Source: Adineta vaga
Taxonomy: Eukaryota; Animalia; Rotifera
Direction of reading: 5' to 3'
DNA: 64,000 nt
Assembly (NCBI GenBank): GCA_021613535.1
Contig: CP075494.1
Span: 10,726,001 to 10,790,000 of the forward strand
The notes below the pieces were generated by a model. The model was not told the origin of the DNA, made no database searches, and saw nothing but the letters and a program-made list of their open reading frames with translations. Positions 26,218-43,093 of the stretch are shown here, piece after piece. Position 1 is the stretch's first letter; each line of letters starts with the position of its first letter. The translations under genes were made by a program, and so were the position numbers.

Positions 26218-27262
26218 ATGAGTTCAAGAGGCGGAAGCGTATGTTATAAATGTAATCAAGTAAGTGTGAATGAATTGAAAAGTATTTGTTGAGTAATCTT
26301 CAATATATTTTAGCCAGGCCATTTTGCTCGTGAATGTCCCGATGGTGATGGTGGCAGCGGTAAGCAACAAATGAATAAAAATGAATAAATGAATACAACT
26401 ATTTTTATGAATTTTTATTTGTTGTAGGTGGTGGCAGTCGAGGAGGATTTAGCCGAGGTTTGAAAATGGAACAAGTTTTAAAACTTCTGGCAACAAGACG
26501 TTGAATTTATTTTCTAGGTTCGTACGGTGGTGGAAGTTCGTACGGAGGACGTGGTTCATATGGTCAGTTATTAACTAAAACTAGAGTCATTTAATACTAA
26601 GAACCAAAAGAGGAGTGAATTTAAAGCTGGATTAAAGAGAAGATCGTTTTCTTTTTTTTGAAACCATTGATTTTTATATTATAAATTTTCTTTTATTTCA
26701 GGTGGAGGTCGAGGAGGATATGGCGGCGGTGGTGGTGGTGGTGGTGGTGGCGGCGGCTCATACGATAGATCAGGTGGCCGTTGGTAATAACCAAATCTAT
26801 GCATTAAGAGAGGAAGGTTCAAATTTTTTGTCTTAGTTATCGTTGTAACCAATCTGGTCATATGGCTCGTGATTGTCCATCAGATAGTAGTCAAAGTGTT
26901 TGCTATAACTGCAATCAACCTGGTTTGTTAATCGATGATTTATTATTTTAATACAAAGTTTCTTTTGATTTTTCGTTTAGGTCATATAAGTCGTGATTGT
27001 ACTGAACCACGCTCAAGCAATTTCGGTAGTGGCGGTGGTGGTGGTGGTTTCCGTGGTGGCCGTGGTACGTCTATATATAACTCCTTTTTTTTTCTTAACA
27101 ATATAATTGTTTCTTTTTTGTTTTGAAGGCGGTGGCGGTGGCGGTGGTGGTGGCGGTGGCAACTGCTATCGATGCTCTAAACCCGGTCATTTCGCACGAG
27201 ATTGTACTGAACCAGATACACGTGGTAGTTCCAATCAACAAGCTGGTGACGATGATCATTAG
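26218..27262 (+). CDS. CNBP/GIS2-like Gly/RGG-rich protein with four CCHC zinc knuckles, multi-exon
   Basis: Spliced translation gives [42 protein letters not shown] and [14 protein letters not shown] separated by GGG/RGG linkers. ATG 26218, TAG 27260-27262. Confidence 0.85.
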
Positions 27263-27889
27263 ATAACGAATGAAAAAGAAAGAAAATTCTATATATTTTT
27301 AACGTATGAACAGCTTAGAAATTCCATCAAACAGCGTTTATATAAAAACAGCATATGATAGATTTTTCTCAAATTTTTTCGTTGTTTTTTTTTCCTTGTT
27401 GTTTATCTAACTAAGCATGTTTTTGATTATAATATAAAAAAAAGATGGCAAAACAACACAAGAACATATAAATTATATCATAATTCATCTCTTCTATTCT
27501 CATAGGTTTGTGTTTTTCTTTTGTTCTTTCCGTTATATGTTGTTCTTATTTTGTGTTTACTTGTTTATTGATCAGTTTTGTTCTACCATAACTGCAATTA
27601 ATGCTCTTGTATGTACAACTTTGTTGCTACATTGGACTTGAGATAACAAGAAAATTTGAAAAACATTACATACATATCTAGAGAAATTGAATAAATTAGA
27701 CTAACAAAGTATCGATCTGAAAATGATTTCTATTTGAAAACGTATGATTAAGTTGCTTTATTCTGCTTTATTGAGGATTAATTTTCTAATAGGATATCAA
27801 ATATAAAATGATATTTGAAAGCATTTGTTCTTATATTTATTTCAATGATGTAAAACAATTCTTATGAAAAGTTTCTTATTGAAATAATG

Positions 27890-28135
27890 CTAATCTTTAT
27901 TCAAGAGTTTTTTTAAGAATTTCATACGATCAATGTCTGGTCTATTAATTTCATTATCACTGTAATCATTATCGTGAATATCTCGCGTAAACCAAGCATA
28001 GGCAAAATTACTTCCTGCTGATCGTTGATTTGGTCCGGCGATTGTACGAGGATGTTCATATCTAGCCAAAACCATATTTAATAGTAGAACAAGAATTGTT
28101 AATTGAACAAGTAATCGAACGGATGATGAAGTCAT
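27890..28135 (-). CDS. Small secreted prepropeptide 1 (81 aa) with YAWFTRDI core
   Basis: Hydrophobic signal peptide (LLVQLTILVLLLNMVLA). Motif shared with the two neighbours. TATAAAA upstream (about 28207-28213) and AATAAA downstream (about 27757-27772). Confidence 0.75.
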   Translation of the reverse strand: MTSSSVRLLVQLTILVLLLNMVLARYEHPRTIAGPNQRSAGSNFAYAWFTRDIHDNDYSDNEINRPDIDRMKFLKKLLNKD

Positions 28136-29313
28136 GTTGAGGAATGTTGTTTAATAGAATATAATGAATTTACTTGATATTACTAAGTGACAAAATATTA
28201 CCGGGATTTTATAAAGTGAAATCAAATCTAAAATAAATATGAAATATTTGCATTGACACGTCAAACGGAAATGAACCACAATTTGCCTTTTACTTGTTAA
28301 TTTAGAGATAGAAAGAAACGATCGTCGGAGGAAAAATAGAAATATGCAAATATTATAAAGCGAGATTATTGTTCATTTATTTGACTTTTCTATCTATTAA
28401 ATAGAATAGAGAACATTTCATCATAGTTAGTTCTTTGTGCAGATTGACTAACGATTAAAATATCTTAATCATGTCAACATATATATAAAAGACAAGATTA
28501 CCTTAGGCATCATATTGTTCAATAAGTTCTCTTGGTATATTTCTATTGTTTTCTGTTTCATGACTATTCTACGGTTTATATATATATATATATTGGGAGA
28601 GGGAGAGAAAAGCGACATGTTACGGTATGTTCATTTTAGAATAATAAATAAAGCATGAAAACTATGATAAAAGAAAGGTAATATTGACTCTTTTGCCGGA
28701 GAAAAGAAAACTTCTCTGTTCTTAAGTTCAAAATGATATACATAAATTTCATCAATATGATTGCTACATCTGATAGTCATTAGACTAATAAAGAAAAGTA
28801 AAATCTTTGGATTAAAACTTTTTCCATTTCTTCAAAAAGAAAATACGAACAAAACAAAACAAAACAAAACACACACACTACTTACTACATCTAAGTGCAA
28901 AATTTGAGTTAGTATTTCGAATGATTCGATACGTTTTCTATATTTTAGTAGAGTTCAGTTCAGATCTTTCTCGAACGTAGAGACATTAGATGGAGTCAGA
29001 GTATTTCTTATATTTGAATGAAAATTACCTAACTGTAGAAAAAAAAACATGACAAACTAAACCATCGATGAAATTAAATGCGACCATTTCATTTTTCTAA
29101 AATGTTTCTTCTTCTGCACTTCATCGAATTCACTTCGATCACAAGAAGGGAAGAAAAGTTATTTATGTATTATAAAATGTTTAAACAACGATTCATTCTC
29201 TTACTCACAAATAACAACCTACGGGTAATTGCTGAAATACTTTAGTTTTTCTAGATCGTTGCGAATGGACATTTATTTTATGAAAAACGTTCACATGAAA
29301 AAAAACTAGAACT

Positions 29314-29568
29314 TCATCGATATTTGTTCAATAGAATATTTAACATATCTTTCGAAGAATATTTTTTTGAATGTTCCATTTGAGATTGAAATTCATCGAT
29401 ATTCGTATCTTCATGAATATCACGTGTAAACCATACGTAACGATTATCATGTTCGGGAGAGATCGGTCGTGTTAATTTTAAACCTTTTCGTTTCGAAGAA
29501 GTTGCTTCGGTTGATTTACATACGACGTTAAGTAATAGAATAATAAGAAGAATTTTTGCATAAATCAT
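29314..29568 (-). CDS. Small secreted prepropeptide 2 (84 aa) with DNRYVWFTRDI core
   Basis: Signal MIYAKILLIILLLNVVCKSTEA, KRK basic site, shared motif, AATAAA just downstream. Confidence 0.75.
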   Translation of the reverse strand: MIYAKILLIILLLNVVCKSTEATSSKRKGLKLTRPISPEHDNRYVWFTRDIHEDTNIDEFQSQMEHSKKYSSKDMLNILLNKYR

Positions 29569-30078
29569 GATTAAATTAAATTCAATATATCGATCGCTAT
29601 TGTATTGATAAAGAAACGATCGCTCCTTCTTTAAATACACCTTGACAAGGATGGAAGGAGAAGGTAGTTTGTCATGTCTGTAAAAAGATCCATTGTCTAT
29701 TTATCTATTAAATAGTTGTAGAATGAACACAATGATTAAATACAACTGACTCATGAATCTCTCACCTAAGTTTCTGATTCTCCTACAGATCTCTTGATTT
29801 TAATGTTATATTGAATTCGTAATCATGAATATTTTATTTTAATAGAAGCTATCAAATACGAAGATCAATCTTGATAATGCGTAAAGTAAATATTTTCTTT
29901 CAATTAATACCCCCTCGGTTTCGATGAATCGTGATGATTGTACAATATTTAGTCAGTTCTTTAAAACCTGTACATGAACTTTCCGTAGCGTAATGAAACC
30001 ATAAGCAAATGGTTTCGACTTTTTTTTATTCAAGAAAATCTTTCAATTTACTTTTTACAAGAAAATCTTCAAATGCAA

Positions 30079-30339
30079 TCATTGATAATAAAGCAGTTCT
30101 TTTCGAAAGAGATATTTGAGTAAATTTCGTGTTCGATGTTTTTGTAAATGATGTTTTGTATTTCTAAAGTCACTCTGAATACTTCGAGTAATCCACACAT
30201 ATCGATTATCACAATCGGGTGCACATGACTGTATCAATTGAGAATACTTCTGTTTAGTGTAGAACAGATTTGGAAAGCCATAGGTAAAATTTAACAGAAT
30301 TAAGAAGAATAAAACTTGTTTCGAGGGCATGATTTTCAT
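30079..30339 (-). CDS. Small secreted prepropeptide 3 (86 aa) with DNRYVWITRSI core
   Basis: Signal QVLFFLILLNFTYG, shared motif, probable 5'UTR intron about 30374-30429, AATAAA downstream (about 30025-30030). Confidence 0.7.
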   Translation of the reverse strand: MKIMPSKQVLFFLILLNFTYGFPNLFYTKQKYSQLIQSCAPDCDNRYVWITRSIQSDFRNTKHHLQKHRTRNLLKYLFRKELLYYQ

Positions 30340-33300
30340 ATGGACATACGAAGTTTAAGAGAGATGATTAGAGCTAAAAAATAGCAAAGAAAGGAATAAT
30401 CGGAAGAAATTTCGAATGAGTAAACTTACTGTTAGGAAAAGAAATCAATATGATTGAGTTCAAGAGATTTAAAAACAATTGATATATTTCTGACTCAGAA
30501 GACGTAGGATGAGAGTGGGTCTAATTTATTTCCAGAAATAGAGAAAAATATAATCGTGAATGACAAGTATGATATGAAGAAAGAATGAAAACGAAGACTC
30601 GAGAAAGGAATGCAATTAGAATACATTTGCACCGAATCTTTATAATATCCGCTTCACAAACGAAGTTTGAAATACGAAATCATAGAGATGAAAACATTTT
30701 CATAAAGATTTCAATAGAATAAAATAGAATCTTTGTTCAGATAATTATATACGAACTTAAGAAGTTCAAATTAAATCAAATAAGTAATCATTAAGGAGAA
30801 GTTATGAATAAAGGTTAGAAAAATAGCTAAAAAAGGCTTGGAGACATGATTTCCAAACATTGTTTTGGTACATCTATCGTCAACCCACATGTTAAAAGGA
30901 CATTTCTGATTAATCTTCTATTTGTATTCTAATGAAATTAGATGATTGTAAAGGTTGTCTTATTGTATAATCAATCGAATTCTAACGTTTATTTTCTTAT
31001 TCAAATAAGCAATTGTAATTGTCATTTTGTGTATATAAAAGAAAATATTGTGCCGGTTAGAATTAACAAGAAAGAAGTTCTATGAATACATTTTCAGTGC
31101 TATTGACAACCGTCGTTGACGCTTTTTTTCTTCATGTTTTCAAATGATCACAGCAATAACATATTGAGAAATCATATCTTCAATTAACAATCTTTTGATG
31201 TATTTTCTTTTTCTTTTTTTATTTATTCATTCATTAAAGAAAGAAAAACACACATTATACACAAACTGCCAAAAATCATCTCTTGCTAGGCTATAACTTG
31301 ACATTTGCCATTCTAATGATGTTTTATAGTAAACAAAATCGTACATTGGATGGCATTACGTTGAAATCAAAAGAATATCGACGAATGAGCTTCTCAAATC
31401 CATACACGGCTAAACTGTCAGATAAAAGTATTTATCCATTTATGACTGATCAGTCAACCATGTAACGATCGATGGAAGCATAAGAGATATTCAACTATAC
31501 ATGTCTTCATAAACCTACCTGTCTAGCTCGTTATAAGAAAAACGAACGACTGATACTTGTTGTGGTTATATGCCTAATGATGCTTCGAATAATCATGCGC
31601 GACAGAAGCAACGACTCGTTACTTTTCTTCTCGTTTTTTTTCAAGCTAGGAAGATATCTTTCTACCATAGTGGTGTTTAGAAGCATACATAACATGGCCT
31701 TCAAGCTTCTTTCTTCTCCTTCTCTCCTTGGTTGTAATTGCGTTTGTATCTTGTTGCTTATACGAAAGGATATCGAGGTGGTGACAAACATACGAAAAAA
31801 AAACGTACCATCAGCATACACTCCAATAAACATGCGTTGTTTTTCATCTTTCACCTTCAAACGATATTTTTTTCTCCACAGTAAAAATATCCCAAGAAGA
31901 CAATGTCGTTGATCGATACTTGTACACAAGCATCACTACTAACAAACATACATACATACATACGTACATATACAAAAAAAAAGAATCTGTTCTTAAAACG
32001 AAACGCGTACGCGAACATACATGAAGAAAGTGTTTGCATCACTCGCTTACAGCGTTCGTTTTCTCTCTATGTCTCTGTCTCTGTCTCTCCTTTTTTTTCG
32101 TGTGCACCACTCATACTAATGCAATCATTTCTCTCTATCGCTTGTCTTTTTTTTCGTAGTTTTTCATGCTCTGCATTTTTCTTTCTCATACTCACATGCT
32201 TTATGTCTATGGGAGTCTTAATTTCGTTTTTTTTGTCCTCTCTCTTTTCTCTCTTTCCGATTACATACATCGATGGCGACATTCGTACTGAGAGACAAAA
32301 TCTTAGTGTAAAAGAAAAAAAGAACATGTATGTGTGTGTGCCAACACAATCATACACAACAGTAGACAGAGAGCCTTCGAAATTTCTATGTGTATGTTTT
32401 TTTTTCTATTTTTTTCTTCTTCTTCAAGGTCAAAATACAGAGATAAGCGACAATCGACAATTATTTTATAAAGTATAATAAAATTTAACTAAGTAAATAT
32501 CAGTTTCTTAGATGAAAATATTGAGATTTTCTCTTAATAACACTCACGAATGATATGAAATCAATCATCAAGGAAGGTATCAGTTGAATAGAACGATATA
32601 GAAAAACCAATTGTCGACATCTTCTTTTTGTCGTATCGAATATCTCTATTGCTAATAATAGAAAATTGTTATATGTTGGACATAGTTTATTACTTTCGAT
32701 GAGCCGCATACCCATCATCTGATATAATCATATAGGCAAAAGAAAAGAAACATCGAATGACATTTGCATTTCCATTAGCGAGTGCATGGAACAGTCTTAA
32801 TTTTCTTGCTCATCTCGACAGCTGACAATACATATAGACAAAAGATATGTATCTAACGGATACTACTGACATACAGGCACATCATCTTTTTGCTATAATA
32901 TGAACGAGAGTATGTCTGTCTTTGTATATATACATACAAATGCATATAGAGGAATAGAGAAAGATATCTTTATACACTTCATCTTATCATTGTCAACTGT
33001 AAAAGAGAATTGTTGAGAGGTATACATATCAATAGAATATCTTTCATTGGACAGTTGCTGTTATATAGAAAAGTAATATAACTGATCGATGAAAGAATAT
33101 ATATATATATATATTACTCATCAGAAATACGACAAGTCAAAGGATATTGATTGTTAAAAATTGCTTCGTCAAACAAAGTTTATCCGTCGTTTTTTTCTCT
33201 TTCTTTTTTTCGATAGATTCGTATAACAATCAATTAAGCGAACGTTTGTTGTTTCGATATAACATCTTGTCAATTATATACAAGTCTCACATCGATATTC

Positions 33301-41944: not shown

Positions 41945-43093
41945 ATGCGCGTTTGGCTGTTTTTATTGTTTGTGTGTGTGCTAACCACAAATAGTCAAGA
42001 GTTGCAGACATTCGGCACAGGTTTATCTAGTCAACGACTTTATAAAGCTGAGGTGAGCTATCATGTTTTAAAAACTTGACGGATTTGATAAGATTTGTTC
42101 GACATTTTAGACTGAAATCTTCAGTTACACACTTTCTGCTGGTGCGAAATTTGGTGTTCTTACCCATTTTTGGACAACTGGTGATCCAGGTAAGTTATCG
42201 TGTAAGATATTCTTCTGATAATTTTGGTATGTCATTATAGCTATTGATGAATCAACTTTTTCATATTATATTGATGGAGAAGCTGTTCCATCTATTCAAT
42301 TTGTTACTTATATGCTAGCCGGAGCGGGATTTACTGATAGAACTGCTCCTTGGGGAACAAAATGGATTGGTAAAGGAGCAAAATCAGGTGGTTGGTATAA
42401 TAATTTGTAAGTTTAAATGCATTTATTTTTCTTCGTGAAACTTTATTTTCTATGTTTAGTCGAGTTCCGTTTCAAAAATCTATTCGTGTCACTGGTAAAT
42501 TACCATCCACTGGTGGTGATGATAAAATCATTTGGATTATTGTTCGTGGAACAGAAAATTTACCAACAGCATTTCATGGTTTTTCGCTTCCACCAACGTC
42601 ACGCTTGACTTTACACAAAATTGAAAGTGTTTCATACGATCCATTAGCATGGGTTCGAATAGTTGATATTCCTACGGGTCGTGGTTTACTTCTATCACAT
42701 ACATTAGCTGTAAGTAGTGGAAACTTGAATTTTCTCGAAGGCTGTTATCATGCATATACACAATATGAACAAAAATTTCCAGGTGTAATTATTTCAACTG
42801 GCACAGAGGATTATTTTGATAGTGCTTTCTATTTTGATGGTGGACAATTTCATTTCGAAGTTTCCGGTTTTACACATTTTCAACAAGTGACAAATACGAC
42901 ATTAGAATGGTCAGCGTATCGTATGCATGATTTAGATCCAATCTTTTTTACGAACGGTTTTCGTTTCGATTGGAGAAATGGTGATGTTGTTGATGATCGT
43001 GGATTTAAATGTATTGTTGATCAAGGTGGACATGTTGTTGGATCACCAACACAATCGAATGTGACATCATATGCATGGGTATATGTTTGGTAG
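41945..43093 (+). CDS. Secreted DUF2961/GH172-family glycoside hydrolase-like protein, 4 exons; horizontal-transfer candidate
   Basis: Signal MRVWLFLLFVCVLTTNS. Motifs THFW, YYIDGEAVPSI, RVPFQKSIRVT, FLEG, GTEDYF and SAYRMHDLDPIFF. Introns 42052-42110, 42190-42240, 42407-42460. Confidence 0.85.

Follow-up and report, generated by a model that had tools for sequence, protein, structure and literature searches.

Before 2024 the only neuropeptide known from rotifers was an AKH-like precursor (10.1101/2024.07.20.604414), and because the families added since then were all found through homology to arthropod peptides, peptides specific to rotifer lineages would have stayed invisible. Adineta vaga, a member of the bdelloids, a group studied for asexuality, desiccation and radiation tolerance, carries four paralogues each of the prohormone convertases PCSK1 and PCSK2 (10.1101/802215). 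Here we describe three short genes that lie in tandem in a 64,000-nucleotide window of the A. vaga genome (C5:10726001-10790000; AT-rich, with about 30% G+C), together with the small protein family to which they belong. The family is built around a core of the type Y[AV]WFTR, and on balance we favour the reading that its members are a new bdelloid family of signalling-peptide precursors, which would be cut after the Arg eight residues before the core, Arg(-8), and after the Arg that ends the core, Arg(+5).

Expression and structure of the three genes

Three co-oriented, uninterrupted open reading frames (ORFs) of 81, 84 and 86 amino acids (aa) are present on the minus strand, in agreement with the original prediction made from the letters of the window. 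That prediction had named a lack of transcripts as one of the findings that would speak against it; transcripts were found for all three genes, as contigs from three sequencing runs belonging to three studies fall exactly on the three gene units, with none in between. That the runs are RNA is a guess; the transcript status holds because DNA could not give rise to splice joints, poly(A) tails or a spliced leader. All three genes are real and expressed, and a chance origin is excluded because both homologues and RNA evidence exist. The features of the three units, with their coding sequences (CDS) and untranslated regions (UTR), are as follows, in window positions.

27814..28227, minus strand: gene 1 mRNA body (contigs from the three runs and three studies span 27814-28229)
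27836..27841, minus strand: gene 1 AATAAA, 22 nt upstream of the poly(A) site
27890..28135, minus strand: gene 1 CDS, 81 aa, coordinates including the stop; YAWFT type, subtype A'; residues 1-24 signal-peptide-like, then RYEHPR...NQR-SAGSNFAYAWFT-R-DIHDND... and the basic tail MKFLKKLLNKD
27983..28000, minus strand: gene 1 core YAWFTR, residues 46-51
29246..29704, minus strand: gene 2 second exon, with the remaining 5'UTR, the entire CDS and the 3'UTR, from contigs
29272-29277, minus strand: gene 2 AATAAA, read from the sequence
29314..29568, minus strand: gene 2 CDS, 84 aa from the first ATG; YVWFT type, subtype C; ...PEHDNRYVWFTRDIHED...MLNILLNKYR
29422..29439, minus strand: gene 2 core YVWFTR, residues 44-49
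29705..29765, minus strand: gene 2 5'UTR intron, 61 nt, GT..AG; joint 29704 to 29766 (CT..AC on the plus strand) in two runs
29766..29820, minus strand: gene 2 first exon, non-coding, as far as contigs extend
29986..30373, minus strand: gene 3 second exon, with the end of the 5'UTR, the CDS and the 3'UTR; polyadenylated at 29986 (unaligned T14 before 29986)
30025-30030, minus strand: gene 3 AATAAA, read from the sequence
30079..30339, minus strand: gene 3 CDS, 86 aa; YVWFT lineage, subtype D; ...CAPDCDNRYVWITRSIQSD...LLKYLFRKELLYYQ
30184..30201, minus strand: gene 3 core YVWITR, residues 47-52
30374..30429, minus strand: gene 3 5'UTR intron, 56 nt, GTAAGT..AG; joint 30373 to 30430 in three runs
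30430..30527, minus strand: gene 3 first exon, non-coding, as far as contigs extend

Each gene has the poly(A) signal that had been predicted for it; transcripts end 22-39 nt past the AATAAA hexamers, and poly(A) tails are seen on two of them (genes 1 and 3). Gene 1 is polyadenylated at 27814, which is preceded by unaligned T-runs. At its other end, 28229, a gene 1 contig carries 18 extra letters whose reverse complement, TTATTACAACTTACCAAG, matches the spliced leader of Rotifera, GGCTTATTACAACTTACCAAGAG (PMC3795323, Table 1), and the gene 1 mRNA is therefore trans-spliced, with the acceptor AG at 28228-28229. The transcripts of genes 2 and 3 extend over 29246-29820 and 29986-30527, and the coding sequences are uninterrupted because the introns of both genes lie within the 5'UTR. 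Counted from an upstream GTG the ORF of gene 2 has 108 aa, and its orthologues have the same start Met as the 84-aa reading.

Strong divergence outside the core had also been predicted, and the overall pairwise identity among the three proteins is 22-28%, with Y[AV]W[FI]TR present in all of them. The positions invariant among genes 1-3 include the Y, W, T, R and I of Y-[AV]-W-[FI]-T-R-x-I and the C-terminal L..L..K, the latter within a common basic, Leu-rich tail. Gene 3 is the most divergent copy, and its F-to-I change in the core is seen nowhere else in the family; it is apparently without public annotation, since its protein is missing among the database matches of the word-based search described below.

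Several further observations concern the transcripts. Upstream of gene 2, the 5'UTR holds a 20-codon upstream ORF (uORF; 29631-29693, minus strand) with two in-frame ATGs, in a frame different from that of the main ORF, and gene 3 has a mini-uORF of 3 codons, which begins with the ATG at 30345-30347 and runs with its stop into the ATG of the main ORF; these uORFs may affect translation. In run X8 (2013), a gene 3 contig over 30146-30494 differs by a 1-nt gap in the 5'UTR and by 10 substitutions, one of which, at 30184, is synonymous and falls in the Arg codon of the core; the contig probably comes from a different allele or strain. At 27908, inside the 3' end of the gene 1 CDS, one base is missing from two contigs of low depth, possibly through sequencing error. 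Run X10, labelled as another organism (B), contains two 151-nt pieces identical to 29592-29742 and 29788-29938, which cover the non-coding promoter and 5'UTR region of gene 2 and no coding parts; contamination or mislabelling is possible.

A conserved block in a variable, probably secreted protein

A word-based search with a five-sequence alignment retrieved 113 proteins, all with [YF][AV]WFTR and with the core W, F, T and R invariant in 113/113. This invariance was possibly an artefact, because such a search needs shared exact 5-mers, and an exhaustive hidden Markov model profile search of 1.84 billion representative proteins was therefore done. It returned 67 matches, of which 66 are genuine and have 57-181 aa; P0143, a 388-aa repeat protein (E 6e-4), was a low-complexity false match. 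Departures from [YF][AV]WFTR were confined to three of the 66 (P0123, P0133 and P0139; variants YSWFTR, DIWFTK and YAWFAR), and FVWFTR occurs in several members, such as P0137. No longer protein, other family or distant relative was found among these 1.84 billion representatives. The named sources are A. vaga, A. ricciae, A. steineri, Rotaria sp. Silwood1, R. socialis and R. magnacalcarata, the rest being metagenome contigs, so that the motif search in relatives proposed with the original prediction finds the motif kept across Adineta and Rotaria. Every named member is annotated as hypothetical or unnamed.

That no described family could be assigned had been stated from the start, and this held in each collection consulted. 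Pfam scans, run at E up to 10 for the three proteins and at E up to 1 for the alignment of 91 members, gave no consistent family; among PDB sequences a profile search detected no relative; and a full-text literature search with core-motif strings yielded chance strings only and no paper on the family. Likewise, the family is absent from the NP-HMMer rotifer neuropeptidome, text and 13 supplements (10.1101/2024.07.20.604414). We conclude that this is a so far undescribed family of small, probably secreted proteins, all of whose named members are bdelloid, where monogonont, seisonid and acanthocephalan genomes and, by name, Didymodactylos lay outside the search scope.

Throughout the family, a leader is followed by some 20 variable residues (often Y-E-x-P...[KR]R), a conserved block, an acidic or Gln-rich stretch of varying length, and a basic tail of the form R.K.LK.IFNRKY, in which 60-80% of members have RK. 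The block, of about 20 residues, reads [NK]-Q-R-S-A-[DE]-x-x-[YN]-[KRE]-Y-[AV]-W-F-T-R-D-[IV]-H-[DN]-[DE], and the core within it lies at median distances of 47 residues from the Met and 30 residues from the apolar run of the leader. The leader itself consists of a short, usually basic n-region (K/R before the apolar run in 79/91) and an apolar run that is below 19 residues, the length of a membrane span, in all 91 members. Small residues occupy -3/-1 before the predicted cleavage points of genes 1-3 (VLA/R, TEA/T and TYG/F). By this layout each protein fits the presence of an N-terminal signal peptide, as had been claimed for the trio. If the leader instead stayed uncleaved, the products would be signal-anchored membrane or endoplasmic reticulum-resident micro-proteins showing the motif in the lumen or outside the cell, a reading with which a conserved polar Asn within the apolar segment and the helix predicted by AlphaFold over gene 2 residues 2-28 would agree; the shortness of the apolar run in every member and the small residues at -3/-1 speak against it, and we consider it highly improbable.

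Beyond the leader, little structure is predicted. AlphaFold2, given the 91-sequence alignment, returned a predicted template modelling score of 0.26 and a predicted local distance difference test of 53-68 outside the leader; the leader helix alone was confident and the core was modelled as coil. According to this model the proteins are without a predicted fold, and Cys is missing after the leader in 89/91 members. Core codons vary synonymously among nine genes (TAT/TAC, GCT/GCC/GCA, GTA/GTG/GTT, ACG/ACA/ACT, CGA/CGT/CGC/AGA), which places the constraint on the peptide and not on the DNA. The whole-gene ratio of non-synonymous to synonymous substitution rates (dN/dS) against orthologues is 0.24-0.65 and, judged by sequence comparison, the remainder of the protein is weakly constrained. 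Peptide precursors usually show just this combination of a constrained core and drifting surroundings.

Basic residues frame this core with high frequency: among the 113 sequences R occupies -8 in 87% and +5 in 100%, K/R precedes the core at -1 in 73%, and a dibasic site occurs somewhere in the mature part of 81/91 members. We thus find the short conserved peptide, framed by basic sites inside a variable precursor, that is expected of a prepropeptide, with the qualification that the sites are monobasic and in a non-classical context; we also find the absence of a globular fold and the selection on the peptide alone. The features fit the prepropeptide class because the proteins combine a secreted layout, small size, lack of fold, an Arg-framed constrained segment, an acidic spacer, and a stable low copy number.

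Each short mRNA encodes a Cys-free protein of 60-110 aa with the N-terminal signal-peptide layout. If the signalling-peptide reading is correct, the function of this protein would reside in the conserved block, and the protein would enter the secretory pathway as a neuropeptide- or hormone-like prepropeptide. PCSK1/PCSK2 would cut after Arg(-8) and after the core-ending Arg, and carboxypeptidase trimming would leave non-amidated peptides of about 12 residues, SA[DE]xx[YN]xY[AV]WFT. In the 73% of members that have K/R immediately before the Tyr, the pentapeptide YAWFT or YVWFT might also be released. The acidic stretch after the core would serve as a spacer, and the basic tail, with its frequent RK, could be a second, less constrained product. 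As a speculation, the acidic context (ENDNEY, SADSGY) would permit Tyr sulfation.

Language-model features of two members point to the same class: their nearest named clusters are nearly all peptide-hormone precursors of unrelated families (PDH, DH31, NPF, spexin, GnRH, galanin, bombesin, CAPA and PrRP), at scores of 0.84-0.88 that lie below the 0.9 level and are leads for the class alone and for no particular family. Besides this shortfall, several points weigh against the proposed processing. Both proposed cleavage sites are monobasic, and for the core-end Arg a K/R is found at P7 but not at P4, P6 or P8; the classical monobasic convertase rule is not followed there. No Gly-basic amidation signal follows the core in any member (0/91), as had been noted for the trio, such a signal being common in the class and not obligatory. 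In addition, conservation continues past the core Arg (D 84%, I/V 91%, H 84%, D/N 84% and D/E 78% in the 113 sequences; 54-91% for DIHD[DE] overall), which is unexpected for a spacer, so that the functional epitope may span the Arg.

Since conservation runs through R-D-I-H-D-D and the Arg lies outside the classical monobasic context, the main rival is an uncut protein: an unprocessed or leader-trimmed, disordered secreted mini-protein in which Y[AV]WFTRDIHD[DE] would be a linear binding motif and the Arg a contact residue. Such a mini-protein could act as a ligand, as a modulator of an extracellular enzyme or receptor, or as a matrix or mucus component. Predicted disorder and lack of fold are consistent with this proposal, and the high word depth of the gene 1 contigs would fit an abundant product, contig depth being a poor measure. 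However, the protein looks segmented by basic sites (Arg at -8, K/R at -1, frequent C-terminal RK), the remaining sequence drifts freely in both length and sequence, and both the architecture and the language-model neighbours are prohormone-like. We therefore regard an uncut mini-protein as rather unlikely.

The tail bears on another alternative, a host-defence precursor comparable to those of frog skin, in which leader, core and acidic stretch would form a pro-region and the variable basic tail would be the active cationic peptide. The order of the parts fits, with a leader, an acidic stretch (net charge -4 in gene 1 and -5 in gene 2) and a basic tail (+2); the tail differs among paralogues, and the genes are duplicated in tandem. 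The original prediction had proposed an amphipathic C-terminal segment shared by the trio and, as one possibility, a role in host defence. The segment is indeed basic, Leu-rich and common to the three proteins, but its amphipathicity is no better than that of shuffles: the hydrophobic moment of the best C-terminal 11-mer (0.57) was reached by 611/1000 shuffles of the same protein. The host-defence reading thereby loses its chief argument and the proposed helix is left without statistical support. Nor does the tail, with its weak positive charge, match the cationic and amphipathic helix expected as the mature peptide of such precursors. Furthermore, the most constrained part is an aromatic hexapeptide, atypical for a pro-piece, and the genes are few (five in A. 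vaga), stable in number and kept in order across species, in contrast to fast-expanding defence families. Taken together, these observations make a defence precursor very unlikely.

Finally, a loose resemblance to proctolin had been pointed out. Proctolin is defined by an RYLPT-type pentapeptide directly behind the signal peptide, followed by Arg, and a bdelloid version of proctolin or whitnin ([RK]-Y-x-x-T, then Arg) would share with the present family the superficial likeness of [KR]-Y-[AV]-W-F-T-R to R-Y-L-P-T-R, a non-amidated product and a short precursor. Yet the core has one residue more and contains no Pro, and a median of 30 residues separates it from the apolar run; Pfam and the profiles gave no match, and the exhaustive search found the family alone. 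Moreover, NP-HMMer assigns proctolin to a different A. ricciae gene, Aric30294 (..ARYHP-RR..) (10.1101/2024.07.20.604414). The resemblance is thus unsupported as kinship, and we find this reading barely credible.

Duplicated clusters on C5 and C2

The A. vaga genome, searched for copies over 100.8 Mb in six contigs, contains exactly five genes of the family: the three on C5 in the window and two on C2, the latter identical to the A. vaga NCBI proteins I4U23_008121 and I4U23_008122. Two further candidates were noise, C6:10533358-10533471 (E 0.46, internal stop, no ORF) and C1:4385702-4385839 (E 0.04, internal stop). The gene orders at the loci compared are given below; in all of them the V gene (YVWFT) comes first and the A gene (YAWFT) follows.

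A. vaga C5: gene 3 (D), gene 2 (C) and gene 1 (A'), followed on the opposite strand by a Gly-rich gene with CCHC zinc knuckles
A. vaga C2: cathepsin, B (NEYVWFTRDLH) and A (YRYAWFTRDIH), followed by the paralogue of the CCHC gene
A. steineri: D-C-A'-CCHC, as on A. vaga C5, with the C gene unannotated
323-kb metagenome contig: ribosomal P1, cathepsin, B, A

Orthologues were found for each gene of the trio. Those of gene 1 are an A. steineri gene (L008:9100-9354) and P0035, P0039 and P0048. Gene 2 is 63% identical to its metagenomic orthologue P0046 (L007) and 40% identical to an unannotated A. steineri ORF (L008:7557-7775, plus strand), and the orthologue of gene 3, A. steineri P0065, shares 48% identity and keeps YVWFTR. 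The subtype C gene of A. steineri has no called gene model, and the 150-aa protein P0010 of Rotaria sp. Silwood1 looks like a fusion of adjacent B and A genes. The family thus illustrates the under-annotation of such short genes.

In a tree calculated without the core columns, the YAWFT and YVWFT genes are separated by a single change (Shimodaira-Hasegawa-like approximate likelihood ratio test, 96); genes 2 and 3 fall together in one V subclade (98), and gene 1 belongs to a four-member A' clade (97). From synteny and this tree, YAWFT and YVWFT appear to be two ancient paralogue lineages, and the best explanation of the trio is that it forms one of two duplicated (ohnologous) syntenic clusters, on C5 and C2. 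The simplest history that synteny and tree suggest has three steps: an old tandem duplication would have produced a V gene and an A gene, the bdelloid genome duplication would then have given two loci, and on the C5 lineage the V gene would have been duplicated once more before A. vaga and A. steineri diverged.

The neighbouring genes extend this comparison. The CCHC gene of the window (26700-27262, plus strand) is a multi-exon gene for a Gly-rich protein with CCHC zinc knuckles and lies tail-to-tail with gene 1; its paralogue at the matching C2 position, with 76.7% identity over one exon, makes it a synteny anchor of the ohnologous clusters. A gene for ribosomal acidic protein P1 (35853-36317, minus strand) shares the orientation of the cluster and is found some 5.5 kb upstream of it, and as P1 also adjoins the cluster on the metagenomic contig L010 (88% identity), microsynteny reaches past the peptide genes. 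A cathepsin gene stands upstream of the C2 and L010 clusters; the window contains no equivalent of it, and it is therefore excluded from the unit. Elsewhere in the window, an intron-free ORF of 213 aa (42452-43093, plus strand) matches DUF2961 (Pfam E 3e-20). Horizontal acquisition is common in bdelloids, and this ORF was possibly acquired in that way, because DUF2961 is mostly bacterial and fungal.

Significance and comparison with known systems

Taking the signalling-peptide precursors and the cluster history together, the genes could represent a hitherto undescribed peptidergic system, bdelloid by its named members, with ..YAWFT and ..YVWFT as ligands of orphan receptors and with genes in tandem since before the genome duplication; we regard this wider proposal as a serious prospect that stops a little short of probable. 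If it is true as a signalling system, it would be a new entry into the almost unexplored neuroendocrinology of bdelloids, for which the family offers concrete candidate ligands, SA..Y[AV]WFT and Y[AV]WFT, for peptidomics and receptor deorphanisation. If the proteins are unprocessed, the motif would still be a new conserved extracellular linear motif. The family is useful for rotifer biology and for the study of neuropeptide evolution, and it does not amount to a new kind of system.

Among described peptides, proctolin (RYLPT) and whitnin/SPTR resemble the candidate products in being short and non-amidated, with a Tyr near the start, a Thr at the end, a single Arg behind it and a small precursor, whereas the rotifer core differs in position, length and residues (YAWFT versus RYLPT, no Pro) and shows no detectable homology. 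Antimicrobial precursors of the amphibian type have leader, acidic region and basic variable tail in the same order; the rotifer family differs from them in its weakly cationic, non-amphipathic tail, its conserved aromatic hexapeptide and its low, stable copy number. The invertebrate neuropeptide and hormone prepropeptides, such as PDF, NPF, orcokinin and allatostatin of A. ricciae (10.1101/2024.07.20.604414), are set apart from the Y[AV]WFTR family by the lack of any sequence or profile match, by core sites that are only monobasic and without an amidation Gly, by the single core copy per precursor, and by conservation that continues for five residues past the presumed cleavage Arg. With these prepropeptides the family nevertheless shares a short, variable and unfolded precursor of secreted layout, in which basic residues flank a single short conserved segment and an acidic spacer is present, as well as small tandem sets of paralogues and conservation limited to the peptide.

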